Assembly (NCBI GenBank): GCA_002269645.1 | Contig: NIVC01003001.1 | Coordinates: 1-64,000, forward strand | DNA length: 64,000 bases | Source of the DNA: Macrostomum lignano | Taxonomy: Eukaryota | Direction: 5' to 3' | In this document: positions 4,343-36,315 of the stretch, piece by piece | Layout: every line of letters begins with the position of its first letter | Numbering within the stretch: the first letter of the stretch is position 1 | Notes under the pieces: generated by a model | Databases searched by the model: none | The model's input: only the letters and a program-made list of their open reading frames with translations | What the model was told of the DNA's origin: nothing | Translations under genes and position numbers: made by a program

Positions 4343-7300
4343 CTGGACAGTAGGGCTGCGCTTTGTCCGGTCGCCAAGCCGCTGTGAAGTTCTGTTCAGA
4401 CAGACAGCTGAAAAAACTGAGCCAGAAGACACATTCTCCCGGCACACGAAGGCCACCTGGTCTCCGACGAGAAACGGACCGGCTGCAGCCACTGCCAATG
4501 TGGAGGCGTTCAGAGGACCGGCCAGCACGCTGGGATCGATTCCGGGACCGAAGTGGTCTTCTGAACAGGTGACCGGCTGGCAGTCCATGGATGCGCCGGC
4601 AGTCCACTGAGGGCCTGGATTGAAAAAATTAAATTGGTGGCTCCCATAGCTGCACTTCAGACTGTCACTATGTTACGCAGTCATCTCGCTGTAAACAAAC
4701 AATTTCTATGCAAAATGTTTTTATAAACAAAGTTTGAGGTCTTTTTTATCCAGGAAAAGCCTGAGGGAATTTCAGTGGTAAACATAATTTTATATATAAT
4801 CTTCCTGTAAACATATACGATTTATGATTTTAAAAACCTTTTTCGCATGCCGCCATCCGTGAGCTCGCGTACGCATCTACAAACCGGCTGTTGGGCCAGC
4901 ACCTCACTTCCACGGTGCTGTTCACTGGCAGGTACACCTGACCGTCTCCCGTAGTCACGTTTCCCAAGTTGTTGCTGGGCACGGCTGTAGATCGAGTCAG
5001 GTTGGTAGGCAACAGACAGGGCTTGGGCTGGCACAGAGTCTCCGATGTCGGCAGCAGCAGCTGGTTGAGCACCGTCCAGTCACCGGCGGTGCAGACCGCC
5101 TGTAGGAGGAACTGCGAGTCGCTCTGTAGACTGAAGTTCGCCGCCAGCGGAGCGAATGCGCTCGAAAGGCAGGTGACGTTGGCCACTCGGTCGGGATCCG
5201 TGTAGGAGCTGGTGGCGAAGTCGACCAGTCCGAATCCCACCAGCTGCGCTAAGAGACTGTTGTTGCAGTGCTCTAAAAAAGATTAGAAGATGGCTTGCTA
5301 TTGAAAAAGACGGCAGTTCAATAAAAAAATTGTATACCGGTATCTAGAACGAGGTTTCCCAGATTGGTGTGCATTCTTTTGCAAGCCACCACTCCAAGTT
5401 TCGGATTAGAAGCAATGATGACAAGCTGCTTACTGCGGCAGCTGAAGGCCACATTTGAGCCGACGCTGCGCCACACTGCCGCAGGCGGATCTCCGTCTGA
5501 CAGTCCGCACACGGCCAGCTCGCTGCTGCCCGGCATGGCAAAGTACGGCTCCTCGCAGCTCAGCCGCACCAAACTTGTGTAGGGCAGGTGCGAGCTGTTA
5601 GCAAAGTTGAACGATGCATTGATGACGGTCATGCGAGCGGCCTGAGGCTGCAGCACGACGGCATCCGGCTGTGAGCAGTTGAGCAGCTCGCACGGACCGG
5701 GAACGTCCGGCTCCCAGCGGTCTCCCAGCCTGCAGAAGATGCTCAACCGCCGGTTCTGCGTCGTCCGAACGAAGCCGGGCCGGCACTCGTAGCTGAGGCT
5801 GTCGTCGACCTGCACTCCGGAAGCCGGCAGACCCGTCTGCAGCTCCTGCTCGAGGTTCAGCGAGCTGTACAGGCTGGAGTTTCCCAGTCCCGGCGGCAGA
5901 CTCGAGCAGGCGGTCGGTCGGCAGTTCAGGTGGGTGAACGAGGTCCAGCTGCTGTTGATGCAGCTGATGACGAAGCTGACAGATCCGTTGGGCAGACCGC
6001 CGACGCTGTAGTTTGTGTTGCAGGTGAAGGCGAGGCTGGCGCCCTCCCAGGAGGTGTTTCCGAGGGTGGCGTTGGCCTGCGCGTTGGCCACGGTCGGAGG
6101 GACGGAGACGCCGCCGCAGTATCCGGGGCTGCAGTCCATGGTGACGGGGCTCCAGCTGCCGCCAGGCATGCAGGAGGCGGTCTGGCTGGAGCCTGTGAGA
6201 CCGGATTCACAGGAGATGTGGATTTCGTCCCCGGGTCGGAATGTTCCGTTCGATAAGAGGTGCGTCAGCAGCTGGCTGTCAGTGTAGTTGTATGTGACGC
6301 CCTTTGTGGTGAAGCTGGTGATAGTTGCGGTGTCATTCGGGTAGACGGGCATCTGGGTGCACGGCAGCGAGACGCATTGGGGCATTTCAATATCCCACAC
6401 GGCGTCCTGAGCGGCGGAATTATTGAGTCACTTGAGTTACTATTTTGATATATCAATAATTACGAATATGGATGTAAGAAAAATTTCAAAGATTTTTGCA
6501 AAGTTAATTTAAGGAGATTCCATTATGTCTGTTTTAAACATTTAGGGTTGTTTGTCATTAATTTAACATACGTGAATTAGAGTTATTCTCAGCTTAATCG
6601 AGCTGAACCTGTACCTGGGTGCATCGCCTCACAATGCTGCTGCCGTTTTTTTCAGAACCAGCGAACACAAAGTTCGGAGCGCAAGTGTATTCAATCTGGT
6701 GAAACGGCAGCTTCTTCAGCTGCAGCTCCGCAGCGGAGAGCGAACTGTTCCAGGAGGCGCAGACGAGATGCCTCTCCGTCAGCTGATTGTCAGTGTGCGG
6801 ACTGGGGCAGGTCATGGCTGAAGTGGAAATTAATTGTAAGTTAACTTGCTCATAAGTTTAATTTAAAGCTCTAGAGTAAGTTTGTCTATTTCAGAATAAA
6901 TACCCATAAAGTACATTTTTATTGGAAACAATAAATTCGTCTCCCCTTGCTCATGGTAGTTTTTGAGGATCTGAACCGATTGGATAATGCTTCAGAACTC
7001 AGATGACCCAAAATAAGCTGGAGTGACATTTTTGTTTCCTACTTTGGGGATGTTAGTATATTTTGGATTACACGTAGCAAGGGGTCAGTAGATTAAGTAT
7101 CAGAAGACGTTGTCCATCCTAATGCTCCCAGTAAGCGTATCGGCACGTAACTATGCAGTTCGAACAACGTTCCTTGGAAATTGGTTTTACACTGGTGACG
7201 TTGGGAGGGGCAACAAAAGGAATATTTATGATGAAGTTCATAATGCAAATGCCTTTCAAAGTTATAAAGCAGGGGTCGGCAAACTCCAGCCCACGAGGCC

Positions 7301-9126
7301 TCTCTAATCCGGCCCTCGGGTCCTTATAACTTCACAATGGCAATCCCGCCCGCTCAAGGTTGGCGTAGCTGTTCTATCTCCTCACTTCTCTCTTCTCTTC
7401 CCGTGGGCGAGGCACTTTGAATGTATTTTACTAGCGTTTGTTTTTGTTATTCGTTGTAACGCTCACTATATGTAAACCTTCCAGCAATAGAAAGATGGCT
7501 TTGGAAAAAGATGTGAAAATTTCTTTACAGAGAAGTGCTTCCAATCAAAGATGCTTACCTGTACAGAGTACACCCTCGTTGGAGTGGTAATTGCTTCTCT
7601 TAACCGCCTTGGGCAACGAGTCTTTCCAGATGTATCTCACGACAAGTCCCTTGCTCTTGTCTTGGCTAAGGATCTCTTTGCTGAGACTAGACCGGCAGGG
7701 GATCCCGGGAAGGCAGAAGGACTGACGTCTCCAGTTGGTCATGCCGGTGTCGAACATGAGCGCAAGCATCAGGTGGCCTCCGTTTAACACATAGGTTCCC
7801 GGAATGATTGAATCATTCAGAAATTTCCTAATCCCGAATGCAATGGGTACACGGTGAGGAGTCACAATGAGGCGTTTTAGCTAGTTTTAGCTAGCAGTAA
7901 GTTGATGGATTATCGAGGGCTGGTTTTGGGGTCTTTGTAAAGATCTCAAGTCTTTGGGTCTGGTCTTGTGTCTTTGCAAGGATGCAGAGATACTATCATA
8001 TGGTACTATATTAGACTATACTACCGTATGCTATGCTAGCTCGCATAAGGATTTATATACATTTCAAGACTACGCACAAAGATTCAACAGTCGAGCTTAG
8101 ATATCACAAAGAATGGGGAAAATTTTCCAAAAACTTCCTAAACTTTCTCTAACAGTGTAAACAAACCATAATTTATCTCGTTTCTCTAAGCTCTCCGCTT
8201 GCGCGGGACGGCCATTGCCGGCTTCGCAGAACAGCTCGTAGGCATCTTGCAGGTACTCGTCTTTAAACTTTAGCTTGGTGGAGTGGACGCAGAAGCTCTG
8301 ATTCACCAGCGGTCCTCCGTCCAAGCTAGCAACCAGGCTTGCTGGACTGCAGGCAATGTAAGGTTCTGCAGAGCCATTACCTGAAGATAGTAGCTTGCTT
8401 ATATAAAAGTGCTAGAAGGTGTCAAGTATTGAATTTTTTAACAGAATGCGACTCACGCTGAGGGAAATACTCGCAGACTGGATACAACTCGACGCTTGTG
8501 TCCACAGCTGTGTACAGAAACTTATTCTCGAATCGGTTTAAGGCTATCAGGTTAAACTTCGCGTCGACAGAGGAATTGTCCCACTGCCCAGCTGGCGGGG
8601 TGAAGGATGGACCGAACATGTTCCAGGCAAGGGGCACCGGGTCTCCTCCTGTGTAAAAATAAGGCTGATAGGTCCAATTAGTGCACAGGTCTTTGCCGTC
8701 TACGATGAGACTGAGTGTAACGCTGAAATTTTTGTTGCGGAATGTTTAAGCGAGCACTCTTTCATTTGGACTCATAGTTCAGAAGATGTAACTGTTGAAA
8801 GGTTTTGCAAGAATTTAATCAGCAAAGGCTCACTTTTCGGTAATCAGACTGTTGAATGCGTCGACGGCTCGAGTGTCGTTGAGAGGAGCGAATATGCTGT
8901 GGTTGTTCTCCTTCAGGGCCAAGCAGTCGGAGGCGAAAGTAGCGTACGGCAGGGACCTGTTGAACGTCGGCGGGTCGGCATCGGAAATCGGGTAGCGGAA
9001 GATGTACTCTGTGCCTTTGAAGTCGGGGATTTTGACGTAGTCCCACCGGTAGCCAAGGCAGACTTGGGAACCACAGTAGTGAGCCAGCCACCACAGTAGG
9101 TAATAAATAACAGCACTTGACATCAT
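4343..9126 (-). CDS. Secreted C-type-lectin-like + multi-Sushi/CCP protein, paralog 1 (1-nt frameshift in exon 8 as assembled)
   Basis: Exons 8834-9126, 8457-8722, 8167-8380, 7559-7827, 6615-6817, 5434-6406, 4838-5272, 4343-4614. All introns are GT..AG with compatible phases, and exon lengths match paralogs 2 and 3. Signal peptide MMSSAVIYYLLWW...; CCP motifs such as YTCAPNF..C..W, SCESG..C..W, YECRPGF..C..W. A possible terminal mini-exon lies at 4262-4290 (DKTGMVHLW*). Confidence 0.82.
7270..7320 (+). mobile_element. hAT (Buster/Charlie-like) DNA transposon terminal remnant
   Basis: CAGGGGTCGGCAAACT followed by CCAGCCCACGAGGCC...ATCCGGCCC, typical of hAT left ends. No partner end was found. 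Confidence 0.5.
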
Positions 9127-9256
9127 TTGTGCCGCTCTTGCTTATTCAAAAACTTTCAACTATATCACTACAACGTTTATGAGATTGAACCAGAATTGCC
9201 GGTGTATTTCACCTCGCCAATCAAGCCAGGAGTTTCTTATAGCTAAGAAAGCAAAT

Positions 9257-9271
9257 GTTTAGTTTGGCAAC
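9257..9271 (-). promoter_or_regulatory. RFX X-box-like site upstream of paralog 1
   Basis: GTTTAGTTTGGCAAC has one strong half-site (GGCAAC) about 130 bp upstream of the ATG at 9126. A CCAAT box (GATTGG) is nearby. Confidence 0.3.
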
Positions 9272-10379
9272 CGGCAAGTCCTGATTGGCTAAGCTGCAGA
9301 TCGAGAAAGATGAAACAATCAAGATTTGTCAGCTTTAGGACAGAAGTTTAAGCGCACTAAGTATACAAAGGCTTCATATTGAATCGCCGAGTGCAAGACA
9401 TAAGCTACGGTTATGTCGATGCACTCACGCCATCTGATAAAAAATGAATGGGAAATGAACTTATTAATCTCGTCGATCATAACTTTAAACTTTATAATTT
9501 TTCGCCTTTGCTCTCAACGGAGGTCGCATAGAACTGACGAACGTACAAACTCTGAATTTTGAATCTCGCCTGAAGTTCCTTGCAAATTACAAGCAGTTTA
9601 CGGCCTGCAAACACGTCAGCACGTTACAGTTTTTATACGTCATAAATTCAACCATCAGACTACACACAAAGTTGTAGCTAAGTCACTACTTACTTAACAA
9701 GATAGACTTAAAATATTTCTCGTGCAATTTGTCCCCAGTGTTTCAGCATATCCTGGCCAGCAGGCTTGCCTCACTCCGTGACGTCACAGTCGCTACCGCA
9801 TCGCTAACTTGCGCGACAGGAGAGAAGTGAGAGATGCACTGGCTGTCAAATATTCTGCCCCACACTTTTCCGCCGCTTTTGTTTCAACGAAAAAGCTTTC
9901 ACCCAACCACGCTAACGGGACTAACAGGTTTAACGCCGCCTTCGTTTCCGCAAAGTCAATCCAATCTGCTTGCCTTGAATAAATACAAGTTTCACTGATA
10001 CAACGCCTTTCGTGCTTTGGTTTTGTAAAGAAATTGTCTCTTTCCCAACATTTCCTTTGCAGCTTTGTCTTGCAGTTTCCGGTAGAAGTTTTTTACAGAA
10101 TCTCCCAATCGATAGCGTGACTTGCATAAAGCTTTAAAATTTCACTGCAGATTTAGAAGCACCTGTAAAATATATATTATTTCTCGAGAAATTTTCGAAA
10201 ATAACCTTTGATTCCACTTTCTGAGCTATAGGTCGAATGTATTGATAATCCATTCCACTCCCCAGCCAGTGAGGAGACAAGTAAAGTGAGTTCAAATTCG
10301 TCAGTGTATGCAAAACTATATAGCGCTCAAGCGGAAGAGAATGAATGCCCATGGTAGACTCGTGCGATGTTTCCAGCAG

Positions 10380-11732: not shown

Positions 11733-14700
11733 TCAAACGTAAGCCGCTGCGCTTAGATACTGCAATTTAAAGTTATTTGTAGTTTTTACGAGCGCATTAA
11801 GAAAGCAAGTTTCCCTGAGAAAGCGTCTTTGCTCTCACCTTGTCTTTAGAGAACAGGGCGCTAACCCCATCCGCTGTCTTCTCCTGAGCGCTGAACGTCT
11901 CAAAGACTGTCTTCAGTCGCACGCAGCAGACGATGAAGTCGTCAAACTCGATGACGCCTTGGCGATTCGCGTAACGCATCACCAGGCAGTTGAAAATCTT
12001 GTTGCTCACTCGGTAGCCTTGGAGTGCAGATTGAGATAGTTTCCTGAATTATGTCACTATAAAAAAATAGAAGTGCTTATCGTGCCGATAGTTCTAATTT
12101 TGTGTGGATAAAATGCGGGACAAGCTTTTATGAGACAAACTTCCATAAAAAATTACTAAAAGCGAAGTTGCTGTGAGCACTCACCGACTGCTTTCAAGGC
12201 CTGCCGCAACTCGTAGCTGTTGAAATTACCAGACTTGTCCTCGTCAAACTTTTTGAAAGCAGTCTTCCACAGTCGCAGGCTGCTCCATAGCGTCTTGAAC
12301 TCCCGGAAGCCCAGCTTCCCTGACTGGTCGGCGTCCATCATAGCCACCATCGAGCGGCAGGTCTCGAGGCAGAAGCCGTCGAATTGGAACTCTGGTTTAA
12401 TCATAACAAAAACTTAATGATTTTTACTTCTTTTAGAGTAATGGGTCTATCGACATCCAGTCCACTAACCTTTCATGAAGGCAATGTTGAGAATATCGCG
12501 CAGCTCATAAGCATCAACCTCCAGGTCGGCACCAGCCACTTTGGCGAATGCATCGCGAAGGGCCCGCTCGAGGGTGAGTTCTTGTGCTGAAGGCTCCATT
12601 GGTATCTGTTTGTGTTTGGCGATGAAAATTTATGTAAACACTCTGGTCTAACATTCAATTAAAAAGCTTCACGTTGCCTAAGAAATCAGGAATAGATCCA
12701 AGGTCTCAAGCGGTGGTCCAGGTGCCAAATAAATTCGTCACAGTTTATATTATGTCATCAAGGACATCAAGGCTACCATTCTCTGATCCAAACGGTAATA
12801 CGTTTATTACTGATTTCGTATCTGACATGCAGGCCTCTAGACAGCATAAAATCAATTAAGAAACTTACCTTCAGATCAACAATAGCTGTGACGTCATCAA
12901 TCTCATCCAGCTTGGCGGGTCGCTCGGTGTACACGCGAAGCAGGAAATCCATTTCAAAGTCCGGCCGATAGGTGCTGGGCACAATAACATAATTGCCTGG
13001 CTTTAGCTTGTGCCGAAAGCACACCTGCCTTTTGTTAGTGTGGGTTGTGAAGCCAGCGCATCGGTTGTACCTGCATGGGCATTGTTGGTTAAAGAACGAT
13101 TTATACGCGTATCTATTGTCAAAGTTCAGATATTTTAATGACTCAGGGAACAGACAGTGTCACATGTTTTAAAATTCAACTCTTCACACGCGTTCCTTGT
13201 CGCAAAGAAAACATCATTGCTGCTTCACCTGAAGAAATTCGTGTCCAAAGGCCCAGTGCCGTCCGTCCTGCGGCGGTAGATCTCGTAGCCGATGAAGAGC
13301 ATGCGGTCTCCAGCAGCCCGATGCCTGCGCAAGTTGATCTGCATCAAGCCGACGATCACTGTGCCCGTATTTTCGTTGTCCGTCTCGTCCGGGTCAACGA
13401 CCGTCACCTGGAACTGCGGATTCGAAGCGAAGCTTCGCAAGTTGTTTCTGCAGCCGCCGGCGCTCAAGCGCTTGCGCCAGGCGCTCTTGTGGCTCACAGA
13501 TTCCCAGCAGCACCGCTTGTCGTTCAACTTGCCAGCCTGCCGACGGGCGTGGGCCAAACTCTCAGGACCAAGATGGCACATCTCTAAATCCTGAGCGGTA
13601 AGTAAATTTGTGTTGCAGTAATTCTTTCTATTGATTTTATCACTAATTTATCGCTAGTTTTTGACAAACGGTAATAATAATAATAATAAAAGTCCTATTG
13701 GGCAGATGTACCAACGACAGCTCAGCCACAGATAGTGTGCGGCGCGTCTGAAGGCTGCGTACGGCTGTTGAGTCCAAGGACTGGAGGGTCGCCACACACA
13801 CCCTCAATTACCCCATCTAATTCTGGTACCCAATTTACAGATGAATGGACTAAATCAGAGGTCAACTGGCTTGCGCAAGGACACAAATTGTTCTGAGTGT
13901 AGTGATTAATAATCAAGCATTCAACCGTGAAAAAAGTGGACATATAAAAACACTTCTAACTTGTATAGTTTGTTGTAATCAAACACTTTGTTAGAATTTC
14001 GTGCGCGACATACTGTTTAAAAAAGCATTCTTGAAGTTATCCGTTTAGCATTCTACGTCAATCATACCGATGAAGCATGCTACTCTCCCCATTTCAGTCA
14101 ATGCCGTTCACTCCGAACTCACAGAGAAGAATTTGCAGAAGTCTTTGATGCTCATCCAGAACTCGCCGTCACCCTTGAATTTGACGTTAATCCGAGCTTT
14201 CTCCTCGGCAGAAACTGCGGCCCAGGCCTTGGACTTGTCGCCCCAGTCGCCCGACCATTCGCGGGAGCTGCCCCAGGGGTTGCGGATGCGCACGAGAGGG
14301 ACGAACACCGTATCGCCTGGAGGCTCGTCTGTGGGCTGGTGGCATCAGAATCAATGACCGGCTTTTCTTGTTTTTAGCACTAAATTGCAAATCTCTTATC
14401 GTGTGAACTTCCCTCATTGCGCATATACTGTAAAGTTGTGCGTGTGCTACAGTGGGGCTGGATTTAACATCACGAGTTTGTGAGTTCAAAATTTGTACCT
14501 TTGTTTGTTTTTGCTAGTCCGCAGCAGTTAATATATTTTCTCCAGAATCGAAGCCAGTAAACTAGGGAACCACCTTGGATAAAAAGTTCTTCCTAATAGG
14601 TTGAATAGCGGTATTTTACCGATAAAAAAGTACGAAGACAAGAAGCGTCCCAGCTCATTGCAGGTAACACAGGTAAAATAATAAAGAAGTGGCTCTAGAC

Positions 14701-17700
14701 GACTTTAAAATGAGATTTCACGGTACAAGTCGCCAAAACAAGAGTCAATTTAAGGCGTTTTATTGTCTGCGACTCTGAAAGGACTGGAGAGTCGTACCTG
14801 AGGCGTGGTAGAGTCGCTGCAGAATCACTCAGTTGCGTCTATAGCGCATCTGCATCACTTTATGAATTAGAATCGCGATTTAATTTTATAACAACTCGAT
14901 TTAGTCGACTTGCATTAGTAGAAGTTTAGCGTTGACACTAAGACTCTTGAACGAATTTTTCGCGACTCGAACGATTTTATAACCCATGTGATGCGTTTCT
15001 CCGTCGTTTCTCCGTCGCAATACAGTCGTTTGAGTCGCTAAAAAGTGACACAGGAGTCGCCTCAGAGTCGCTAGTCAGTAGTGTATTGTTTGCAATGACC
15101 CTTTAGCGATTCTTGTCACGGTAAAGTTTTTAATTGGTTTACTAGTCTTGTTACTGAAAGTAGTGTGATGTAACCACGCTCTGGTCGCGGGATATGGCAA
15201 GGGAAATTTTTCAAAAGTACCTCCGATCTCCGTGCACCCCCTGAGCAGAGCCGTCGAGACTGGGCCGGGTCTTTGACCAGGCCTGCAGACTCCCGCTCTG
15301 CTGCGCCTCTGCTGCCTCGGCTCCGTCTCCCACCCAACCACACGAGCCTTTCCGGAGCCCCTATCTCCCTCTGCCTCCACCCGCTACTCTATTTCCTATG
15401 CGCTCTACCCTATCTATTATGTACTTCTCCCACTCTCCCTCTTTTTTCTTTCTTTTTGGACTGTTTTTCCTGCGCTGTGCCCCTCTCTTCCCGTGCCTAC
15501 TCACAGTACTTTGTGCGCTCACCGTCTACCCACCCCTTAGTGAACTCCCAAACGGTGACGCAAGCCTTGTGACCCCTTCTTCCCCTCGATGACTCATCGA
15601 TGACTCACCACCCCCTCTTGCGCAACCTTTTCTCATGCTATTGTTCTCCTCCCCAAATTTCTCATGCGACACCCACCCCACCTCCGCTTCTATTGTTCTC
15701 GTTTTTGATTCTTTTGTTCTCCTCTTCACATCCAATTATCACATTTTCTTGGATTTTCTCTTTCTTTTGTTCTCGTTTTCGCACCCAATTAGCACCTTTT
15801 CTCCAATGTTTACTTTTCCATTGTTCTCGGTTCTCCCCAATTATCCCCGATTTCCATTTCCTTTGTTCTCGACCCCAGCCCTATTGTTCTCAATGTTTGC
15901 TTGCGCAACACTTTCTCGACCTCCCGCTGCGCCAATTATCCCCCCACCCCACCTCCGGATTGCGCAATTTCTCTATTTCTCATGTTGCTATGCCGGTCTC
16001 ATGCTTCTCATCATGACTCATTCTGACGTCATTTCGCCGGCAGCCAATCAGAGAGAGGGAGTCATGGAAACGACCTTGGAGCGGCGGCTGGGAAGGCTAT
16101 TTAAGGAAGCGGTTTTCGGCGTGAGAAACTTAACTTCGGCTCTCCTCTTGTCCTTCTTTGGACTCGCTGTCGGACGTTGATCTGACCCATTCGTCTATAG
16201 GACGAACCTCTGCCGGTCCGCGGTCTGTTACCGCCAAGTTACCTCAGCTCCCAAAGTGAGCTCATCTGCCGGCCCGTGGTCTGTTACCGCCCAGCATCTT
16301 CAGCATCGCCTGAACTACATCCGCGCCTCGTCGCTTCAGCGCATCGCCGCCTCACTGTCTGCCTGTCTGCAGCCAGCAGCCGCCCATGGTCACCCCATCG
16401 CTCTCTCTCTCTCTGTGCAGCCGCCGGTAAGTTCCTGTTACTAATTTGTGCTCTAATTGCCTTTGCTTATCCGGGGTTTGCTTATTTCCCATTGCTTGAT
16501 TAGAGAGCTGAGCCAATTGTGATGCCGTATGTTTGCTGTATTTTACTCAATAGTGAAGCCGCCTAATTGCAATGGCTTGCTAAGCCTTCTCCCTGGGTGG
16601 CAAAGCATAAGGAAGTTTGGGTAAGCTAATGGCCTCTCCCCGAGCAAAGCCCGCCTGTGTGTGCGTGCTGCGGGTCCGAGTGTGCGTGCAGTAGAGGGAA
16701 TTAGCGAGTCTTGGAATGGCAGTAGGAATTGGTTGCAACCCCATGCTGACGTGTCCCTTCGCCCTGAGCAATCTAAACCATAGACAGTACATGTTCGCCT
16801 CACACTACTCTTAGTAATTGAAGCCGCAAGTCCGCCTCGCTCACAGCCACAAAGGATCCCCTGCTGAGAAATCCTCCAGATTGAGCCCAGAGTTCCCGAT
16901 CATGCCCCAAGCAGAGTCCCTGTACTCGGCTGCATGTGTCTCCCCTGTTAGCCTAAATCCCATGGTAACCAATCCAGGCGGGGCTCTAGCCTCGAGAGGT
17001 CTGGTAGTAAGATCTAGGTGCGCCAGGTCACATAGAGTGGTGCGCCAGGTCACCTTGGCTACAGGTGGGGTCCATGTGGGTCCTTGGCCCTCTGGTCACG
17101 AAAAGCGCTACCAAAGCTATCAATCATGTGGGCGGGACAGTCTGGTGCTGGAGGTCCGTCAGATCATTGCCCGGTCATAGGCAGCCTACGGTCGGTGCCC
17201 TCTCTGGTCATGCGTTCGCCTCCCCGCGGAGCGGACGGGCGACAAGGGCGGTTACATCAAGTGTAATATTGTATTAACCTACAATTAGTTGTTGTTCAGT
17301 AAAGTTTACTGGTATTTTGAATATTATATACAATTTAGTAACAATAATTTAATTTTTTTATTTATGCAGGCTTTTTTTAGTCTGTCTTAAGTTGATTTTT
17401 TGCTACTTATTAGCAGTTCCGTCTCTGTAACAACTGCACGCTCTTACTTACCTTGCCATCCTCGGTGACAAAACTTTCACAATAGAGAAGTGCATCTTGA
17501 GTTTTCATTTTAACCTGAAATTACAAATTTAGGTAGGGTATCTTATATCTTATTATTGTTTACAGACGGAAAGTTGCCTGAGGGAGAGTTTACAGAGACT
17601 AAACAAGCTTAAGTCGCCCGCACCGGTGCTGCCCCAGTGACAGAGTAGGCGTGTCTCGAGTCCAGCCCGCAGCCAGCCCAGTCAGACAGGTTTTTTGTTT

Positions 17701-24413: not shown

Positions 24414-27400
24414 ATGATGCAGCCACAGTACTTTAACTACCTGCTGTGGTCGCTTCTCATTGGCTGCCTCGGCTCATTTTGTTTCGGCTACAGGTGGGAC
24501 TACGTCAAGGTGCCGAACTACAAAGGCAGCGAGTACATCTTCCGTTACCCACTGAATAGCTACAACAATTTCCACGACTCAGAGTCATACACCACCTTCG
24601 CAGCAGACTGTCTATCACTGACGGAAAACACGCATCCGATTTTCGCCCCGCTCAACGACACAAGAGCAGTGGACGCCTTCACAAAATTGTTCGCAGAAAA
24701 GTGAGTCAACTTGGCTGATCTGATTCAAAACTCTAGAACGCATTGATATCAATGCTGATATCAAACGTGTGTAACATCAACACAGCGAGCTGCTTACAAA
24801 CATGTGCACTCGTAGAGTCATAAAAATTTGCGTAGCTACCTTGCATTTCAGCGCCACGCTGATGAACATACTAAAGGGTAGGCGGCTCTGCACCAACTGG
24901 ACCTACCAGCCCTATCACTACACCGGAGGAGCCCCGGTGCCCTTGGCCTGGAACATGTTTGGGCCGAGTTTCACACCGCCAGCATCCCTGTGGGACAGCG
25001 CTTTAGTCGACGATAGGTGTAACTTAATTGCGCTAAAGCGAGCCTCGAATATGTTTCAGTACATCGCTGTGGATGTCAACACTGATATGTACCCAGTGTG
25101 CGAGTACTTTCCGCTGCGTAAGTTTTTAGTTCCTTTTTGCTTAATCAGTGGATTCTGTATCGATTGGGTCATCATAGGCCGCGACAATTTCTTTATTTTT
25201 AGTAATCCGGATGATTTGAATTGGCCTTTACGAAAGAAGATAGATAGAAAACTATAAATTGTGACGTCTATACATATTTTACGAGAATGCGACTTCACAC
25301 TTTATTAAGGGAATAAAAACCGTCCCCTTTCCCCTAGTGTCATTCCAGCCTAGTGTCAGTACAGTCGAGTGTCATTGCAGCCTAGTGTCATTGCAGCCTC
25401 AGTGTCAGTACAGTCTAGTGTCAGTACAGCCTAGTGTCAGTACAGTCGAGTGTCAGTACAGTCTAGTGTCAGTACAGTCGAGTGTCAGTACAGTCTAGTG
25501 TCAGTTCAGTCTAGTGTCAGTACAGTCGAGTGTCAAAATGTCTATACATGTACAAAGTAATTTCCTCACCCCGTCCCCCTACCTCGCAGCAAACGCCTCG
25601 GCAATGGCCGGCTTTGCGTGCAGCCAAGCGAGCCTGGTTGCTACAGTGGACGGGGGCCCATCGGTAAATCAGAGCTACTGCGTTCACTCCACTCAGTTGC
25701 AGCCTGATAACGATTACAAGTACGACAACTACCGTCTGTTCTGCGAGAAAGGCGATGGACGGCCCGCTCAGGCGGAGAGCAGTGAGAAGAGAAGCAAGTT
25801 ATGGTGAGAAAGTGTTTTTCAAACAGCAAGACATTTCTAGTATTCCTAGCAACGAATCGAACATATGAAGTAGTACACGCAGTTACATACGATCCGTAAA
25901 ATATGACTTAAAGATGACTTCTAAGAAGCAGATGTCTACCCAAACATCCAGCTCATTAAATATTACACTTAAAATTTCGGCCAGGAAATTTCTTAATGAC
26001 TCAATTCTACCCGGATCCAACGTGCAAAACGGAAAATACCTGATGCTGGCTCTCATGTTCGACACGGGAATGACAAACTGGAGGCATCAGTCCTTCTGTT
26101 TGCCTGGGACTCCGTGTCGGTCCAGCATCAACAGAGATATTCTTTCACAGTCTAAAACAAAAGGAGGCATTGTGTATTACAGCTGGGAAGGCAATGGGCC
26201 GAGAGAAGTTCGCATAGTAGAATATAACAATGATTGCGCCGTGTTGTGCACAGGTTAGTTGACGACTCAATTGACATACTCTTACAGACTTATGCAATGC
26301 CAGCTGAGTATTGCATCAGTCTGTAAGTCTGTCAGCTAAGCTAAAGTTGATTAGCTGAATCAACTTCATACTTCAGCCATGACCTGCCCCAGTCCGCACA
26401 CTGACGACCAGCTGACGGAGAGGCATCTCGTCTGCGCCTCCTGGAACAGTTCGCTCTCCGCTGCGGAGCTGCAGCTGAAGAAGCTGCCGTTTCACCACAT
26501 TGAATACACTTGCGCTCCCAACTTTGTGTTCGTCGGTGCCGAGCAAAATAGCAGCATTGTGAGGCGATGCACTCAGGTAAAACAGACGGTGACGTTTACT
26601 ACATTCAGGTAACAAGTTACATAAGTATTTCACGCGCCAATGCTGTACACAAGCGCTATATATCCTGTAACTTAATAGGAGAAAAGTGGAAAAAGATCAA
26701 AACTTGTGCATAGTCAAATGAGTTTCCATTATTTTACTGAACATAAGGCTGAACTAATTTTGTTGCATGTGATTCAACAGGATGCCGTTTGGGACAGCGA
26801 AATTCCGACCTGCGTCTCGCTGCCGTGCACCCAGATGCCCGTCTATCCGAATGACACAGCAACCATCACCAGCTTCACAACGAAGGGCGTCACCTACAAC
26901 TACACTGATAGCCAGCTGCTGACGCACCTCTTGTCGAACGGAACATTCCGACCCGGAGACGAAATCCACATCTCCTGTGAATCCGGTCTCACAGGCTCCA
27001 GCCAGACCGCCTCCTGCATGCCTGGCGGCAGCTGGAGCCCCGTCACCATGGACTGCAGCCCCGGATACTGTGGCGGCATTTCCGTCCCTCCGACGGTGGC
27101 CAACTCGCAGACCAACGCCACCCTCGGAAACACCTCCTGGGAGGGCGCCAGCCTCGCCTTCACCTGCAACACAAACTACAGCGTCAGCGGCCTGCCCAAC
27201 GGATCTGTCAGCTTCGTCATCAGCTGCATCAACAGCAGCTGGACCTCGTTCACCCACCTGAACTGCCGACCGACCGCCTGCTCGAGTCTGCCACCGGGAC
27301 TGGGAAACTCCAGCCTGTACAGCTCGCTGAACCTCGAGCAGGAGCTGCAGACGGGTCTGCCGGCTTCCGGAGTGCAGGTCGACGACAGCCTCAGCTACGA

Positions 27401-28914
27401 GTGTCGGCCCGGCTTCGTTCGGACGACGCAGAACCGGCGATTGAGCATCTTCTGCAGGCTGGGAGACCGCTGGGAGCCGGACGTTCCCGGTCCGTGCCAG
27501 CTGCTCAACTGCTCACAGCCGGATGCCATCGTGCTGCAGCCTCAGGCCGCTCGCATGACCGTCATCAATGCATCGTTCAACTTTGCTAACAGCTCGCACC
27601 TGCCCTACACAAGTTTGGTGCGGCTGAGCTGCGAAGAGCCGTACTTTGCCATGCCGGGCAGCAGCGAGCTGGCCGTGTGCGGACTGTCAGACGGAGATCC
27701 GCCTGCGGCAGTGTGGCGCAGCGTCGGCTCAAATGTGGCCTTCAGCTGCCGCAGTAAGCAACTTGTCATTATTGCTTCTAATCCGAAACTTGGAGTGGTG
27801 GCTTGCAAAAGAATGTACACCAATCTGGGCAATTTAGTTATAGATACCGGTATATAAATTTTGTATTGAACTGCCGTCTTTCTCAACAGAAAGCCATCTC
27901 CGAACCTCTCGCAGAGCACTGCAACAACAGTCTCTTGGCTCAGCTTGTCGGATTCGGACTGGTCGACTTCCCCACCAGCTCCTACACGGATCCCGACCGA
28001 GTGGCCAACATCACCTGTTTTTCGAGCGCCTTCGCTCCGCTGGCGGCGAACGTCAGTCTACAGAGCGACTCGCAGTTCCTCCTACAGGCGGTCTGCACCG
28101 CCGGTGACTGGACGGTGCTCAACCAGCTGCTGCTGCCGACATCGGAGACTCTGTGCCAGCCGAAGCCCTGTATGTTGCCTACCAACCTGACTCGATCTTC
28201 AGCCGTGCCCAGCAACAACCTGGGAACCGTGACTACGGGAGACGGTCAGGTGTACCTGCCAGTGAACAGCAGCGTGGAAGTGAGGTGCTGGCCCAACTGC
28301 CGTTTTGTGGACGCGTACGCCAGCTCCCGGACGGCTACATGTGATATAGGTCTGTCTTGAGCGTTTCACGACATCAATTAGTTTTTCGTAGATCTTGCAG
28401 TTTACGTCAAGGTGCACATTAGGAGAATAACGAAAAACTTGGCAGTCAGTCAGTCAGCCAGAGAAGGATTTGTCATTAAATTGTATTTTGTTTATGCCTT
28501 GGCAGATCCGTACATAGATTGTACCAGAATGCTACCGGTTTCGATCAGCGCCTTATAAAGATTCCTAGATGCTCAACTGAAAATTATGCTAAAGAATGCT
28601 AGTGCAGGCATCAGCATACCGCCATTCAATCTTGCCAGGCCCTCAGTGGAGCATCGGCGGCTCCATGAACTGCCAGCCGGTCGTCTGTCCTGACCGAGAC
28701 TTCGGTCCCGGGATCGAATCCAGCGTTCTGGTTGGTCCTCTGAACGCCTCCACTCCGGCGGAGACTGCGACAAGGCCGTTCCTTATCGGAGACCAGGTGG
28801 CCTTCACGTGCCGGGAGAACGCCTCTTCTTCTGGCTTAGTTTTGCTCAACTGCACCGCTGAGCCGAACTTCACAGCCGTCTGGCGACCAAACTTTGAACA
28901 GCCCTACTGCGCAG
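24414..28914 (+). CDS. Secreted C-type-lectin-like + multi-Sushi/CCP protein, paralog 2 (intact frame, at least 973 aa; terminal exon not identified)
   Basis: Exons 24414-24700, 24852-25117, 25590-25803, 25985-26253, 26377-26576, 26781-27753, 27915-28349, 28639-28914. All introns are GT..AG and the frame is open throughout. Signal peptide MMQPQYFNYLLWSLLIGCLGSFCFG; lectin-like ends YPVCEY and CAVLC; about 8 CCP modules. Confidence 0.88.
25332..25535. repeat. ~16-bp minisatellite (CTAGTGTCAGTACAGT)n in intron 2 of paralog 2
   Basis: Tandem AGTGTCA-containing units. Confidence 0.9.
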
Positions 28915-29720: not shown

Positions 29721-30362
29721 CAACGGAGGCGTGAATGAGCTGAACCGAGAAGACGGATGGTGTCAATTGCTCACTAGCATTGCTGAAGCGGAACTCCACG
29801 CATTTTGAGCGCATGCAGCCGAAGAATCAATATGCTCGCGAACCGTGGGGAATTAGGAGAAATTGCGAGACTCCTGTCTTCACAGGTGAATGCTTAACTA
29901 TGCACACAAGGCAGTCTAACAGTTCAAAAAAAATGATCAGGAAAACACACTAGTATCCTCAGATGCGTAAATGCTTTAAGTATTTGGCTCAAATGTACTT
30001 CTAAAAGATGTTTTATTTATATTTGATACTTAGTTAGCAAAGACACAAATAAATAACTAGGTGGTAAGATTCACTGAAAGTAATAACAGTCTCTTTTAAA
30101 CGATATTGACAGGAAGACTGTTAAAATCTTTAATTACTTTTCAGGAAATAAGTCAGCCTGATTTATAGTCAGAACTACTGTCCTTTGTTTAACGTGAGAG
30201 GCACAGATGTCCATTTGATGTCTGCCCAAGTCTAATAACGTCTAGCTCGTATCTTTAGCAAAAAGGGCAACTCTCTCCAACTTACCAATGAAAACTTACC
30301 ATATCTGGCAGTGTGCCAAGCCGCTAAATTTCATTCAGGCCTCCATAAAAGAAGAGACTTAC

Positions 30363-33300
30363 CAGTGCAATACGGTCGGGTAGCATTCGACTGCCAGACG
30401 GCTGTGAAGTTCGGCCCAGCGGTGCAGTTGAGCAGCACTGAGCCCGGAGAAGACGCATTCTCCCGGCACACGAAGGACACCTGGTCTCCGATGAAGAACG
30501 GCCCGGTTGCCGTCTCGGCCAGGGTGGAAGCGTTTAGAGGACCGGCCAGCACGCTGGGATCGATCCCGTGACCGAAGTGGCTGTCCGGACAGACGACCAA
30601 CTGGCAGTTCATAGAGCCGCCGGCGCTCCACTGGGGGCCTGGATTTAAAAATGAAAGTGTTGGCTCACGTAGCCGAATTTCAGTTTGTCAAGACTGGGAT
30701 AACCCAGACACGGAAATCGCGGGTAGTTATATTGTATACCTGCAACTCTCGTCATAAACTAGGAGCCTTCACAACCATAAAAATTTGAAGGACTTTTAGC
30801 AGTAGAGCATCAAACTTCATCGTCTGAGCACACGTACGCGTTGATAAAACAAAGTAGCTCATAATTAAACGAAAAATCCTACACCTATTATTAGCAACAT
30901 GCCCAACTCGAAGCTTAAGAATGAATGCGAATTATCAGTCAGGGAACTTACCTAGAACACAAGTAGCCGTCCGAGAGCTCGCGTACGCGTCCACAAAGCG
31001 GCTGTTGGGCCAGCACCTCACTTCCACGGTGCTGTTCACTGGCAGGTACACCTGACCGTCTCCCGTAGTCACGTTTCCCAGGTTGTTGCTGGGAACGGCT
31101 GTAGATCGAGTCAGGTTGGTAGGCAACAGACAGGGCTTCGGCTGGCACAGAGTCTCCGATGTCGGCAGCAGCAGCTGGTTGAGCACCGTCCAGTCTCCGG
31201 CCGTGCAGACAGCCTGTAGGAAGAACTGCGAGTCGCTCTGTAGACTGACGTTCGCCGCCAGCGGAGCGAAGGCGCTCAAAAGGCAGGTGACGTTGGCGAC
31301 TCGGTCGGGATCCGTGTAGGAGCTGGTGGGGAAGTCGACCAGTCCGACTCCGACCAGCTGCGCCAAGAGACTGTTGTTGCAGTGCTCTACAAGAGGTTCG
31401 GAGATGGCTTTCTGTTGAAAAAGATTGTAGTTCATTGATGTGGCGGTCCACTGCCGCCAACTTATTAACATAATGCGGACTGCAGAGCTTTGCCTAAATG
31501 CCTCCCTTACTGTTATACCTATGGCCCAAATAGACGCTCAAGTTAAGAAGCCAGGCCGAACTTGAGGCCTGGCAAGCGGACTTTCTTTACTCGCTCGCAC
31601 AGCCTAAGGCGAGCCGCTACATTGAATAATTATATACCGGTATCTATAACTAGATTGCCCAGAGTGGTGTACATTCTTTTGCAAGCCACCACTCCAAGTT
31701 TCGGATTAGAAGCAATAATGACAAGTTGCTTACTGCGGCAGCTGAAGGCCACATTTGAGCCGACGCTGCGCCACACTGCCGCAGGCGGATCTCCGTCTGA
31801 CAGTCCGCACACGGCCAGCTCGCTGCTGTCCGGCATGGCAAAGTACGGCTCCTCGCAGCTCAGCCGCACCAAACTTGTGTAGGGCAGGTGCGAGCTGTTA
31901 GCAAAGTTGAACGATGCATTGATGACGGTCATGCGAGCGGCCTGAGGCTGCAGCACGATGGCATCCGGCTGTGAGCAGTTGAGCAGCTGGCACGGACCGG
32001 GAACGTCCGGCTCCCAGCGGTCTCCCAGCCTGCAGAAGATGCTCAATCGCCGGTTCTGCGTCGTCCGAACGAAGCCGGGCCGACACTCGTAGCTGAGGCT
32101 GTCGTCGACCTGCACTCCGGAAGCCGGCAGACCCGTCTGCAGCTCCTGCTCGAGGTTCAGCGAGCTGTACAGGCTGGAGTTTCCCAGTCCCGGTGGCAGA
32201 CTCGAGCAGGCGGTCGGTCGGCAGTTCAGGTGGGTGAACGAGGTCCAGCTGCTGTTGATGCAGCTGATGACGAAGCTGACAGATCCGTTGGGCAGGCCGC
32301 TGACGCTGTAGTTTGTGTTGCAGGTGAAGGCGAGGCTGGCGCCCTCCCAGGAGGTGTTTCCGAGGGTGGCGTTGGTCTGCGAGTTGGCCACCGTCGGAGG
32401 GACGGAAATGCCGCCACAGTATCCGGGGCTGCAGTCCATGGTGACGGGGCTCCAGCTGCCGCCAGGCATGCAGGAGGCGGTCTGGCTGGAGCCTGTGAGA
32501 CCGGATTCACAGGAGATGTGGATTTCGTCTCCGGGTCGGAATGTTCCGTTCGACAAGAGGTGCGGCAGCAGCTGGCTGTCAGTGTAGTTGTAGGTGACGC
32601 CCTTCGTTGTGAAGCTGGTGATGGTTGCTGTGTCATTCGGATAGACGGGCATCTGGGTGCACGGCAGCGAGACGCAGGTCGGAATTTCGCTGTCCCAAAC
32701 GGCATCCTGTTGAATCACATGCAACAAAATTAGTTCAGCCTTATGTTCAGTAAAATAATGGAAACTCATTTGACTATGCACAAGTTTTGATCTTTTTCCA
32801 CTTTTCTCCTATTAAGTTACAGGATATATAGCGCTTGTGTACAGCATTGGCGCGTGAAATACTTATGTAACTTGTTACCTGAATGTAGTAAACGTCACCG
32901 TCTGTTTTACCTGAGTGCATCGCCTCACAATGCTGCTATTTTGCTCGGCACCGACGAACACAAAGTTGGGAGCGCAAGTGTATTCAATGTGGTGAAACGG
33001 CAGCTTCTTCAGCTGCAGCTCCGCAGCGGAGAGCGAACTGTTCCAGGAGGCGCAGACGAGATGCCTCTCCGTCAGCTGGTCGTCAGTGTGCGGACTGGGG
33101 CAGGTCATGGCTGAAGTGAAGTGGAAATTATGGCTTAAGATAACTTTTTTGGATTATGCTTTGATTTGTAAACAACCAACTCTGTTGATTACTAATCATG
33201 AGAGACTTGAATTTTATTAATGTATTATAACGTGTACATGTAGCATGGGTAACATCCCAAAATCCCAATATCGGAAAAGGCCTATTGCACGTCAAGCTTT

Positions 33301-36300
33301 ATTTGCTGTCCCCCAAGAAAATAGCGTAATGTAGGACAGGCATAAAATATTATACTGCATTAAACTAGATTATTAAGAGCCAGAATAGTGGTTCCGACCT
33401 GCACATAGGACAGCCACTTGTTCGTCAAATTCCTTGTCCTTGATTTCTTTTGGATCACCATTGTCCCATTTTGAAATCACTATCAGTCCTTTCTCCTTAT
33501 CGTGATCAAGGATGTCTTTGTTGAGACTGGACCGGCACGGAATTCTCGGCAAGCAGAAGGACTGATGCCTCCAGTTGGTCATGCCAGTGTCGAACATTAG
33601 CGCCAACATCAGGTGGTCTCCTTCGTTCACAGATTGGCTTTGCAGGATAGAGTTGTTCAGGAACTCCCTAAATGAATTAAAATCGATTTGCTAAAATTGT
33701 TAGCAGTTTCAATCAGAGGCCTAGAATTTGAATGTTTGATCGGAATCACCTGTGTGGAATGTTTTGACTCGATTTTTTGACGAGACTTCCACCAAAACGT
33801 TATAAGAAATGGAAGAGACAGAAAAGTCAGAAAAGAGAATTTGAGCGACAGAAAGAGCTGTCGTTTGGCGTGAGGTTTTTTGTGATAAAAATGATGAGGT
33901 AAAATAAGATAAAAGTACACCAAGAATCCAAAGGTATGAATAGAAACACACCACATCTTTTGTCGTTTCTCTGCACTCTCAGCTTGAGCAGGCCGACCAG
34001 TCCGATTCTCGCAGAACAAGTTATATTTGTCTTTTTCGTACTCGTCATCCAGTTTCAGCTTTTGAAAATGAACGCAATAGCTTTGATTCACCAGCGGCCC
34101 TTCGTCAATGCTGGCAACCAATGTGACCGGGCTGCAGGTGCTGCTTCCAGTTGAGCTGTTGGCTGCAAAATTTTTTTGAATAATCAGATTTTAACTCTTG
34201 TGTAGCTAAACAGAACAGTATGGCAGAAATAGGAAACTGACTTCAGGTAAAAGTATCAGCCGCCTACATTAAATGAGATTGGTCTGTTAATATCATTCTC
34301 TATCCTCCATCCCTATCACCATATTCGATCATTTGCAGTAGTTCTGTCACCCTCACTACGATAGCTTTGTCACCCTCACTGGGGTAGCTTTGTCACCCCC
34401 ACTGCGGTAGCTTTGTCACCCTCATTGCAGTAGCTTTGTCACCCCCACTGCGGTAGCTTTGTCACCCCCACTGCGGTAGCTTTGTCACCCTCATTGCGGT
34501 AGCTTTGTCACCCCCACTGCGGTAGCTTTGTCACCCCATTGCAGTAGCTTTGTCACCCCCACTGCAGTAGCTTTATCAACCTCATTGCAGTAGCTTTGTC
34601 ACCCCCATTGCAGTAGCTTTGTCAACCTCATTGCAGTAGCTCTGTCATCCCCATTGCAGTAGCTCTGTCACCCCCATTGCAGTAGCTTTGTCACCCCCAT
34701 TGCAGTAGCTCTGTCAACACCATTTCAGTAGCTCTGTCATCCCCATTGCAGTAGCTTTGTCAACACCATTTCAGTAGCTTTCGCGCTCTAGGAATTATTT
34801 TCTACTCATTGAATAATTAAGCAACTTGAGAATAAGCGGCTACTCACGCAGCGGAAAGTACTCGCACATCGGGTACATGTGCACATCGGTAGACACGGCC
34901 GTGTACATAAACGAATTCTGAGTTCGCTTCAATGCGATCAGATTGATTTTTTTAGTAACGGATTTTTTATCCCACTGCCAAGCTGGCGGGGTGAAAGTCG
35001 GTCCGAACATGTTCCAGGCCAGGGGCACCGGGTCTCTCAGAATAGTAATAGGGCTTGTAGGTCCAGTTGGTTGCCAGCTCTTCGTCGTCCACAATTATTC
35101 TGACTGTGGCGCTGTTGCAGTTTCGTATGAATTAAAAGTATATAAAGATATTGATTTGGTGTAATAATTGAAAAAATCTTCTAAAAAAGTCTTCTAAAAA
35201 ATCCAAACTAACAGGGATTGATCGGTCGGTTTCGTTCAGGAATACGACGGAGACTTCTACTGTCAGCATATAAAAACGACCACTTTTGATAAGCTTTCCC
35301 GAGGCAACTAATATTTTTTGATGAGAAGTAGCTTGATTGATATTTTTGTTAGTTATAGATTGTAGCTCGTAGTACGATTGTGTTGGTTGTTGGTAGTTGT
35401 CATCGATTTTTGGCTCTCCGTTCAGACTCCAATAGACGCAAATTGAAGTAACACCATATGGTGCGTTTTAACGACTTTTTAATCACTCAGGAGCCTGGGA
35501 AGCTCGCAAAATCTTGGTGAAAAAAGTATGAGGCTCGTTCAAAAGCACTGTCTATGGCCAAGCCTTATACAAATAATTAAGAACTGAATCAGTTAACCAT
35601 TTTTCCGACCATCAAATGCAAGTGTGAATTGACCAAGGACCACTAGAAGTCAATACAGTAACAGGAGATTAAATAATATTTTAGAAATCAAGACATCAGA
35701 GAATATCCAGAGAATATCTATGGTTGCTTCATCAAAGGGCTTTTAGCACTGCAAGCATCTTTCAGTGAGGAAAACTCACTGATAATAGGAAGATAGATTA
35801 TGGATATTATTATAGATTTATCTAGATATTCTCTGGGCGACACGTAATGCAAGTTTTAGTACGAGCTTATATGGAGTTTGTACGAAGTATAAGGCTTGGC
35901 CATAGACGATGAGTTAAAACGAGCATCGTTACTTTTTTCACCATTATTTGCGTGTTTCCCATCGACCTGAGTGGTCTAGTCTGGACTTAGTCTATGGTAA
36001 AAAGCTGTGGCTTACAACTCTCACTTACTTCTCAGCCAATAGTTTGGTGAACGCGTCGAGCGCTCTGGTGTCGTTGAGCGGTGCGTAGATCTTGTGACCT
36101 TCCTCCGTCAAGTTAAAACAGTCAGAGGCAAAAGTCGTATATCGCAGGTCGGTGTACAAGCTGGAGCCGTCGATCGGGTAGCGGAAGATGTACTCAGTGC
36201 CCCTGAAGTTCGGCATCTTGACGTAATCCCACCGGTAGCCAAGGTAGACCGGACCGTGGCAGCAGCAGCACACGAGCCACCAAAGCAGGAATCGAGCAGA

Positions 36301-36315
36301 AATCTTAGAAGTCAT
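30363..36315 (-). CDS. Secreted C-type-lectin-like + multi-Sushi/CCP protein, paralog 3 (2-nt deletion in exon 2 as assembled; possible pseudogene or assembly error)
   Basis: Exons 36029-36315, 34848-35111, 33952-34162, 33399-33667, 32911-33110, 31734-32706, 30952-31386, 30363-30638. All introns are GT..AG. Exon 2 is 264 nt against 266 nt in both paralogs; the other exons are intact. Confidence 0.78.
31439..31621. mobile_element. 183-bp TGT..ACA insertion with 4-bp TSD (small solo-LTR-like element) in intron 6 of paralog 3
   Basis: Termini TGTGGCGG and CCGCTACA, with TTGA duplicated at 31435-31438 and 31622-31625. It is absent from the 161-nt equivalent intron of paralogs 1 and 2; this intron is 347 nt. 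Confidence 0.8.
34338..34780. repeat. 22-23-bp minisatellite (GTAGCTTTGTCACCCCCACTGCG)n in intron 2 of paralog 3
   Basis: Period 23, e.g. 34451 to 34474. Confidence 0.95.
35497..35965. mobile_element. MITE-like element with ~75-bp imperfect inverted arms
   Basis: GGTGAAAAAAGTA..GCTCGTT..GTCTATGGCCAAGCCTTATAC (to 35570) is mirrored by GTATAAGGCTTGGCCATAGAC..AACGAGC..TACTTTTTTCACC (from 35887). Confidence 0.6.

Follow-up and report, generated by a model that had tools for sequence, protein, structure and literature searches.

Gene structures at the locus

The stretch of Macrostomum lignano DNA analyzed here covers positions 1 to 64,000 of contig NIVC01003001.1 (assembly GCA_002269645.1) and is referred to below as the window. 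Split genes and abundant minisatellites mark it as eukaryotic, and the database matches of the exon 6 peptide and of the heads point to this free-living flatworm as its source. It contains a cluster of three paralogous genes whose predicted products combine a Cys-containing head with a stalk of CCP/Sushi modules, and our findings indicate that the stalks, unlike the heads, have been homogenized by gene conversion. A tblastn search with the copy 2 protein as query identified exactly three copies of the family within the 64-kb window and no further fragments. Splice-aware exon models, built with P0001 and P0002 of M. lignano as guide proteins, divide each copy into eight exons, with GT-AG boundaries in 21/21 introns, and thereby support the three eight-exon paralogs proposed in a preliminary description made from the sequence alone. 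The limits given there were also correct, position 4343 being the end of exon 8 in copy 1 and position 36315 the ATG of copy 3. The genes and their two parts are as follows.

4343-9126, minus strand: copy 1 gene, splice-aware model with GT-AG introns; conceptual protein of 975 amino acids; 3' end open
Copy 1 exons, 5' to 3', minus strand: 9126-8834, 8722-8457, 8380-8167, 7827-7559, 6817-6615, 6406-5434, 5272-4838, 4614-4343
24414-28914, plus strand: copy 2 gene, 973 codons without a stop, GT-AG introns; 3' end open
Copy 2 exons, plus strand: 24414-24700, 24852-25117, 25590-25803, 25985-26253, 26377-26576, 26781-27753, 27915-28349, 28639-28914
30363-36315, minus strand: copy 3 gene, splice-aware model; 3' end open
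Copy 3 exons, 5' to 3', minus strand: 36315-36029, 35111-34848, 34162-33952, 33667-33399, 33110-32911, 32706-31734, 31386-30952, 30638-30363
24414-26253, plus strand: copy 2 head, exons 1-4, about 346 amino acids, with a signal-like N-terminus and two Cys-containing halves of about 160 amino acids each
7559-9126, minus strand, and 33399-36315, minus strand: head equivalents in copies 1 and 3
26377-28914, plus strand: copy 2 stalk, exons 5-8, eight CCP/Sushi modules assigned from Pfam PF00084, Cys/Trp periodicity and sequon counts
4343-6817, minus strand, and 30363-33110, minus strand: stalk equivalents in copies 1 and 3

As assembled, only copy 2 has an uninterrupted reading frame, and its exon junctions match the M. 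lignano proteins P0001, P0002 and P0008. An independent database fragment, P0008, continues from exon 4 into exon 5 (“AVLCT-A-MTCPSPH”) and so confirms that a single transcript encodes both head and stalk. Every copy begins with a hydrophobic, signal-like segment, in keeping with the signal peptide proposed earlier; it is the sole strongly hydrophobic membrane or signal candidate, and no transmembrane segment was found in the modeled part (exons 1-8) of any copy. Exon 8 terminates at a phase-1 GT donor in all three copies. Inspection of the downstream DNA and a tblastx comparison among the three downstream regions found no conserved ninth exon, and only differing short tails or read-through tails are possible there.

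The stalk: eight CCP/Sushi modules

CCP/Sushi modules are about 60-80 residues long and carry four Cys and a conserved Trp. Compared with the Pfam Sushi profile PF00084, the copy 2 stalk scored 81.1 bits (cut-off 20.7; E=7.7e-23) with four separately significant stretches, while exon 6 alone reached E=3e-15. The stalk contains 34 Cys (8x4 plus 2 extra), with a Trp between Cys III and IV in most modules; Sushi was the only match in the Pfam scan, in which no EGF module was found. The earlier estimate of about eight modules can therefore be stated as eight, and the stalk is confirmed as a predicted glycosylated array of CCP/Sushi modules. The number of N-glycosylation sequons is 29-33 per protein, and 23 of the 29 in copy 2 lie in the stalk.

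Exon 6 is the largest unit of this array, with 973 nucleotides (nt; 324 codons plus 1 nt) and 12 N-X-S/T sequons in all three copies, just as first described. We counted two residue differences between copies 2 and 3 (T->P and G->D) and nine between copies 1 and 2, where two and about ten had been given. Protein identity is 95-97% over exons 5-7 and intermediate, 65-76%, in exon 8.

The copies also differ in individual cysteines. Copy 2 has two that are absent from the other copies, one in CCP7 (exon 7, “CWPNCRF”, 28254-28256 region) and one in the first head half (“DDRCNL”), and copy 3 lacks a head Cys conserved elsewhere (C113A). The odd or even Cys count differs among the copies, which could matter for disulfide-linked oligomerization.

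Homogenization of the stalk by gene conversion

The near-identity of exon 6 that first drew attention to the stalk is real, but it is not confined to that exon: it forms part of a 1,498-bp tract in which copies 2 and 3 are 99.4% identical and which takes in the whole of intron 5. The two sides of the tract and the identity of each segment along the genes are given below.

26360-27857, plus strand: conversion tract, copy 2 side, comprising 17 nt of intron 4, exon 5, all of intron 5, exon 6 and 104 nt of intron 6
31630-33125, minus strand: conversion tract, copy 3 side, pairing with 26360-27857 of copy 2
Introns 1-4: copies 2 vs 3, about 45-53% (unalignable); copies 1 vs 2, about 49-57% (unalignable)
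Exon 5: copies 2 vs 3, 100%; copies 1 vs 2, 94%
Intron 5: copies 2 vs 3, 100% (204/204); copies 1 vs 2, 55% (unalignable)
Exon 6: copies 2 vs 3, 99.6%; copies 1 vs 2, 96.6%
Intron 6: copies 2 vs 3, 89%; copies 1 vs 2, 87%
Exon 7: copies 2 vs 3, 94.5%; copies 1 vs 2, 93.6%
Intron 7: copies 2 vs 3, about 47% (unalignable); copies 1 vs 2, about 50% (unalignable)

The identical intron 5 bears on the origin of this pattern, because selection on the protein cannot hold an intron constant and so does not account for the constancy of the stalk. The distribution of variable sites is also uneven. From exon 5 through exon 6, copies 2 and 3 share the same state at 159 of 161 variable sites, and in exon 7 all three patterns that can occur are found intermixed (15/11/11). 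Similarly, P0004, which is encoded elsewhere in the genome or in another assembly, mixes copy 1 and copy 2 states in exons 6-8. In intron 6, copies 1 and 2 have diverged by 13%, close to the synonymous divergence (dS) of the stalk, 0.10-0.15; this is the level expected if the intron has drifted neutrally since the two copies shared a conversion event and the exons have been under constraint from then on. An identical intron, discordant dS and mosaic sites are the marks classically left by concerted evolution through non-allelic gene conversion, which we regard as the very probable cause. The homogenized stalk of the preliminary description is thus borne out by the 204/204 identity of intron 5, the low dS of the stalk and the mosaic sites.

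Selection on heads and stalks

Nonsynonymous (dN) and synonymous divergence were estimated by the Nei-Gojobori method among the three genomic copies, with the following results.

Head (exons 1-4): dS 1.6-2.2; dN 0.29-0.33; dN/dS 0.15-0.18
Exons 5-7, copies 1 vs 2: dS 0.125; dN 0.024; dN/dS 0.19
Exons 5-7, copies 2 vs 3: dS 0.037; dN 0.012; dN/dS 0.31
Exon 8: dS 0.5-0.65; dN 0.15-0.23; dN/dS 0.25-0.47

The values of dN/dS are alike in head and stalk and those of dS lie 15- to 50-fold apart, so the contrast between the two parts is one of age and not of selection. Head and stalk appear to be under the same kind of purifying selection, with ages that differ 15- to 50-fold because of gene conversion. 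No 15-codon window of the head has a proportion of nonsynonymous differences (pN) equal to or above that of synonymous differences (pS), in a comparison of three genomic copies with saturated dS. The maximum pN/pS, 0.90, falls in alignment columns 46-60, an indel-bearing loop of exon 1. Each head lineage carries 15-19 private replacements per about 180 sites at which the others agree. Judged from these substitution patterns, the heads are ancient paralogs in which purifying selection preserves invariant cores and a few loops are relaxed.

Frameshifts in copies 1 and 3

Of the three paralogs in the preliminary description, copy 2 is uninterrupted, but copies 1 and 3 are frameshifted as assembled.

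35030-35040, minus strand: copy 3 exon 2 frameshift, net -2 nt; GGAGGA of copies 1 and 2 reads GAGA
4411-4416, minus strand: copy 1 exon 8 frameshift, T-run 1 nt short, with a Ser codon lost just upstream

In copy 3, exon 2 measures 264 nt against 266 in the other copies. The change lies at about 35034-35040; homology to the other copies continues on both sides of it but in different frames, and translation in the shifted frame ends at a stop near 34970. Exon 8 of copy 1 measures 272 nt against 276, and the last 25 or so residues of CCP8 are scrambled. The copy 1 lesion may be an assembly error, given that a copy-1-like protein, P0006, stays in frame across the T-run, that the UniProt model P0004 has a similar slip in exon 8 and that the public M. 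lignano assemblies were built from error-prone PacBio continuous long reads (PMC5730564). Such an error is a less ready explanation for the 2-nt loss in copy 3. Either copy 3 is a very young pseudogene or an assembly indel has disrupted it, and the same choice applies, less seriously, to copy 1.

If the cluster as a whole were decaying, its copies would be pseudogenes or on the way to becoming so, and the divergence of the heads would be neutral drift. Both frameshifts are what such decay would produce, as is the loss of the conserved Cys from copy 3 (C113A). Against this, dN/dS is 0.15-0.3 in every region and pair, the GT-AG boundaries are kept in all introns, copy 2 is fully intact and the only in-frame stops are those that the frameshifts themselves cause. 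Copy 3 has 19 private replacements in 180 sites and thus shows no excess over the other lineages, from which it follows that its frameshift is either very young or artefactual. With the evidence from P0006, P0004 and the read type on the copy 1 lesion, decay of the cluster is improbable, if somewhat less so than the other alternatives considered below.

Sequence and fold of the head

Protein identity among the heads is 58-64%, and exons 1 and 3 contain small indels, as expected from the description of exons 1-4 as differing at a large share of residues. The four available head lineages are roughly equidistant (60-64% identity). Five paralogs with saturated dS all agree at about one third of the positions in the head, including the stretches PVPLAWNMFGP, GRPAQAES and LALMFDTGMTNW.

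The preliminary description had assigned two C-type-lectin-like domains (CTLDs) to this region. A canonical CTLD has a double-loop alpha/beta fold with WIGL and WND motifs and nested disulfides C1-C4 and C2-C3, together with EPN or QPD in sugar binders. None of the profile comparisons recovered such a domain. With hmmscan, no Pfam family was found in single head exons, in the spliced copy 2 head or in P0001 and P0002, at E<=1 or at E<=10, and no lectin was among the matches of the head profile at E<=10 in 177,635 PDB sequences. The sole PDB match, a prion-like protein (E=0.059), was treated as noise. Each head half was also aligned by hhalign with an alignment of five CTLDs, of which E-selectin, L-selectin and DC-SIGN, but not ASGR1 and langerin, were PDB-validated; the probability was 0.1%. 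WIGL, WND, EPN and the inner Cys pair are absent from the head in all copies, and QPD occurs once, in copy 2 only. There is a loose resemblance to CTLDs in an outer pair of Cys about 108-113 residues apart in each half and in the strings “FAPLNDTRAVDAF” and “VCEY.” No more than three Cys are conserved in the first half, and an outer pair is the only one with CTLD-like spacing that can be proposed.

AlphaFold2 gave a mean predicted local distance difference test score of 35.3 for the whole head (the homolog P0001 plus the window exons, 16-row alignment) and 39.1 for the second half (P0003, 10 rows), low confidence that reflects too few homologs and is inadequate for a fold search. The CTLD assignment is thus unsupported rather than disproved. 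The possibility that the two halves arose by internal duplication was rejected (hhalign probability 1.1%).

The restricted distribution of the head is clearer than its fold. A word-indexed search of 5.8 billion proteins found no relatives outside M. lignano, and HMMER, run exhaustively over 1.84 billion representative proteins, recovered nothing beyond three short pieces of family members. By sequence, the head appears to be a lineage-restricted orphan. It is possible, though doubtful, that it represents a new extracellular, non-CTLD fold confined to Macrostomum or the macrostomids, and that the genes form a new secreted recognition or adhesion family in which the head of each paralog has its own ligand.

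These results bear directly on the suggestion that the genes form a diversified pattern-recognition family, in which two C-type-lectin heads would be under diversifying selection and the rod would be kept constant by functional constraint. The contrast in identity between head and stalk is real, the loosely CTLD-like spacing and strings are present, and a few variable, indel-bearing loops of the head approach parity between pN and pS, with the maximum of 0.90 given above. The selective part of the proposal is nevertheless largely refuted. The heads, said to be diversified as in the immune-receptor families of invertebrates, have a dN/dS of 0.15-0.18, no window in which pN reaches pS and about one third of their positions invariant; a dN/dS comparison of the kind recommended at the outset, made by exon group, gave no diversifying signal in them and a stalk dN/dS no lower than that of the head, and the supposedly constant block encloses an intron that is 100% identical. 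The domain part fared no better in the HMMER and HHpred-style searches, which returned no lectin from Pfam at E<=10 or from the PDB, an hhalign probability of 0.1% and none of the lectin motifs. Head divergence accordingly looks neither adaptive nor like simple decay, the refuting conditions named at the outset apply only in part, and a diversified lectin family is quite unlikely.

Database relatives and comparison with known systems

Members of this family are present in UniProt as M. lignano fragments: A0A1I8HEB2 (P0001), A0A1I8JCK7 (P0002), A0A1I8JBY5 (P0004), A0A1I8JBS7 (P0005) and A0A1I8HRL6 (P0006), to which P0003 is added. The 324-residue exon 6 peptide is 99% identical to P0004, P0006 is copy-1-like, and the heads of P0001-P0003 are about 60% identical to the window copies. 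All UniProt family entries are partial, being head-only or stalk-only, and none has the full architecture of a head and eight CCP modules. The models P0002 and P0004 read through introns, and P0004 slips frame in exon 8.

The automatic names of these entries clash: “GON domain-containing,” “Conjugal transfer protein,” “Fibronectin type-II domain-containing” and “Sushi domain-containing.” When examined by hmmscan, the GON-named entry, P0001, did not match the GON profile (PF08685) at E<=10, and the entry named for fibronectin type II, P0003, did not match the fn2 profile (PF00040) at E<=1. The automatic names should not be trusted. The view that this architecture is not a named family is supported by such fragments with mutually inconsistent names, and a literature search on the family and its UniProt accessions found no mention of either. 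A contig search found none encoding P0001, P0003, P0004 or P0008. The additional near-identical family members in databases can be explained by the fact that M. lignano is a hidden neopolyploid (PMC5704211, PMC10733133).

Three groups of known proteins resemble this family in different respects, and each differs from it in others.

Selectins: In selectins and in selectin-like proteins of invertebrates such as Drosophila Furrowed, an N-terminal C-type lectin domain is followed by a run of CCP modules. The likeness lies in an N-terminal globular, Cys-containing head on a linear CCP array, presumably extracellular and heavily N-glycosylated; by functional analogy, the spacer would hold the binding head off the surface. 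However, the family described here has no CTLD signature, no EGF module and, in the modeled part, no transmembrane segment or cytoplasmic tail, and its head consists of two halves instead of one domain. Membership in the selectin family was rejected on the grounds that there is no Lectin_C, no EGF and no anchor in the modeled part, whose 3' end is incomplete.

CFH-CFHR and RCA clusters: These tandem genes for vertebrate complement CCP proteins, which consist of CCP modules only, are reshaped by gene conversion and non-allelic recombination. The evolutionary mechanism is the same as the one proposed here, with clustered CCP-array genes in which some segments are near-identical by conversion and others diverged. 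In contrast, the M. lignano genes encode a non-CCP head of about 320 amino acids and are flatworm-restricted, and no sequence relationship was found beyond the generic Sushi profile.

FREPs, 185/333 and VCBPs: The FREPs of snails, the 185/333 proteins of sea urchins and the VCBPs of amphioxus have as their defining trait a recognition part that is hypervariable or positively selected. They are likewise secreted, lineage-restricted multigene families with one variable and one constant part. Here, however, purifying selection acts on ancient heads (dN/dS 0.15-0.18), and conversion accounts for the constant part.

Proposed explanation

Taken together, we interpret the locus as a tandem cluster of three members of an uncharacterized, lineage-restricted M. 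lignano family that combines an orphan head with eight CCP modules and has homogenized stalks, with a probability of about 0.8. The gene structures, the CCP identity of the stalk, the conversion signature, purifying selection and the taxonomic restriction are the established parts of this interpretation. Each member would encode an apparently secreted protein consisting of a signal-like peptide, a Cys-containing head of about 320 amino acids and a rod of eight CCP modules. Non-allelic gene conversion would have rewritten the stalks again and again, with the long stalk exons, which are still homologous, and above all the 973-nt exon 6 as its anchor. It is plausible that conversion sits in the stalk because exon 6 is by far the longest uninterrupted homology. 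In the latest event, a stretch of about 1.5 kb that takes in intron 5 would have passed between copies 2 and 3; copy 1 would be linked to them by older events in exon 5 and in the segment from exon 6 through intron 6 to exon 7. The short head exons (214-293 nt), lying amid fast-changing, unalignable introns, would be too diverged to pair and would stay distinct.

As for the products, they may be secreted, heavily glycosylated, elongated proteins that present a paralog-specific head on a CCP spacer for extracellular binding or adhesion, a role that we propose only tentatively. From the general dimensions of CCP modules, the head would be held about 30 nm out.

Several points weigh against this explanation. 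Intron 5 of copy 1 (6407-6614, 208 nt) has no similarity to the 204-nt intron 5 at 26577-26780 and 32707-32910, despite flanking exons that are 94-97% identical. This mismatch is only partly explained and requires either that tracts anchored in exons arose separately or that the intron was replaced later; that the exon-bounded homogenization of copy 1 came from partly spliced, RNA-derived templates is scarcely credible. With three genomic copies, neither the direction of conversion nor the number of events is resolvable. Polishing with multi-mapping short reads could have exaggerated the identity of copies 2 and 3 (PMC5730564), but it could not create homology in an intron. The 3' end lies outside the model, and if a terminal exon was missed, it could encode a membrane anchor. 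Finally, secretion and function are inferred from sequence.

It is very unlikely that the near-identical block stems instead from a recent partial duplication, segmental or inverted, or from an assembly artefact that pasted one sequence into two paralogs: the tail-to-tail arrangement of copies 2 and 3, about 1.4 kb apart, would fit an inverted duplication or chimeric long reads, and the window does contain a 217-N scaffold gap, yet the block is internal, with diverged flanks on both sides (introns 4 and 7 unalignable, exon 8 80% identical), and the two copies of it still differ at four positions of exon 6 and by an indel of 186 nt in intron 6, while the homogenization of copy 1 is older and independent (dS 0.125) and the independent P0004 is also mosaic. 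A duplication that replaced only the middle of a gene would, moreover, be operationally the same as conversion.

Neighboring genes and repeats

An unrelated gene, for a calpain-type cysteine protease, separates copy 1 from copy 2 and thus interrupts the cluster. The other features recorded in the window are listed below.

13225-18052, minus strand: calpain-type cysteine protease gene; its exon open reading frames (ORFs) match Peptidase_C2 at 17609-18052 (E=6e-30) and Calpain_III at 13225-13581 (E=2e-21)
56574-57035, minus strand: GNAT N-acetyltransferase ORF, Acetyltransf_1 (E=6e-11), adjoining a large complex minisatellite region
2027-2238, 18249-18553, 19839-20388, 21055-21580, 47507-47634, 48551-49450 and 57275-59185: minisatellite or microsatellite arrays
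25334-25535: minisatellite in intron 2 of copy 2
34333-34781: minisatellite in intron 2 of copy 3
45148-45364: run of 217 N, a scaffold gap in a scaffolded draft assembly

The arrays of the window have periods of 4-123 nt, extend up to about 1.9 kb, contain long spurious ORFs in several frames and are unrelated to the family. The intron 2 minisatellites of copies 2 and 3 differ from each other (16-nt and 23-nt units). Intron 2 measures 76, 472 and 685 nt in the three copies, a difference that these minisatellites explain in large part and that shows the fast turnover of the head introns.

Significance for the family

The genes described here belong to a family of uncharacterized, taxonomically restricted CCP proteins that undergo ordinary, textbook concerted evolution, and they bear on no long-standing open question. 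Their analysis provides the first full-length architecture for an M. lignano family known in databases only as misnamed fragments, and it flags two probable assembly or pseudogene lesions. It also indicates that a variable head on a constant stalk, an arrangement that resembles an immune receptor, can arise passively, where conversion homogenizes long exons and short, isolated exons escape. RNA interference works in M. lignano. Transgenesis is also established in this species (PMC5730564). If the head is indeed a new fold with paralog-specific ligands, the family would offer a tractable example of lineage-restricted extracellular innovation.

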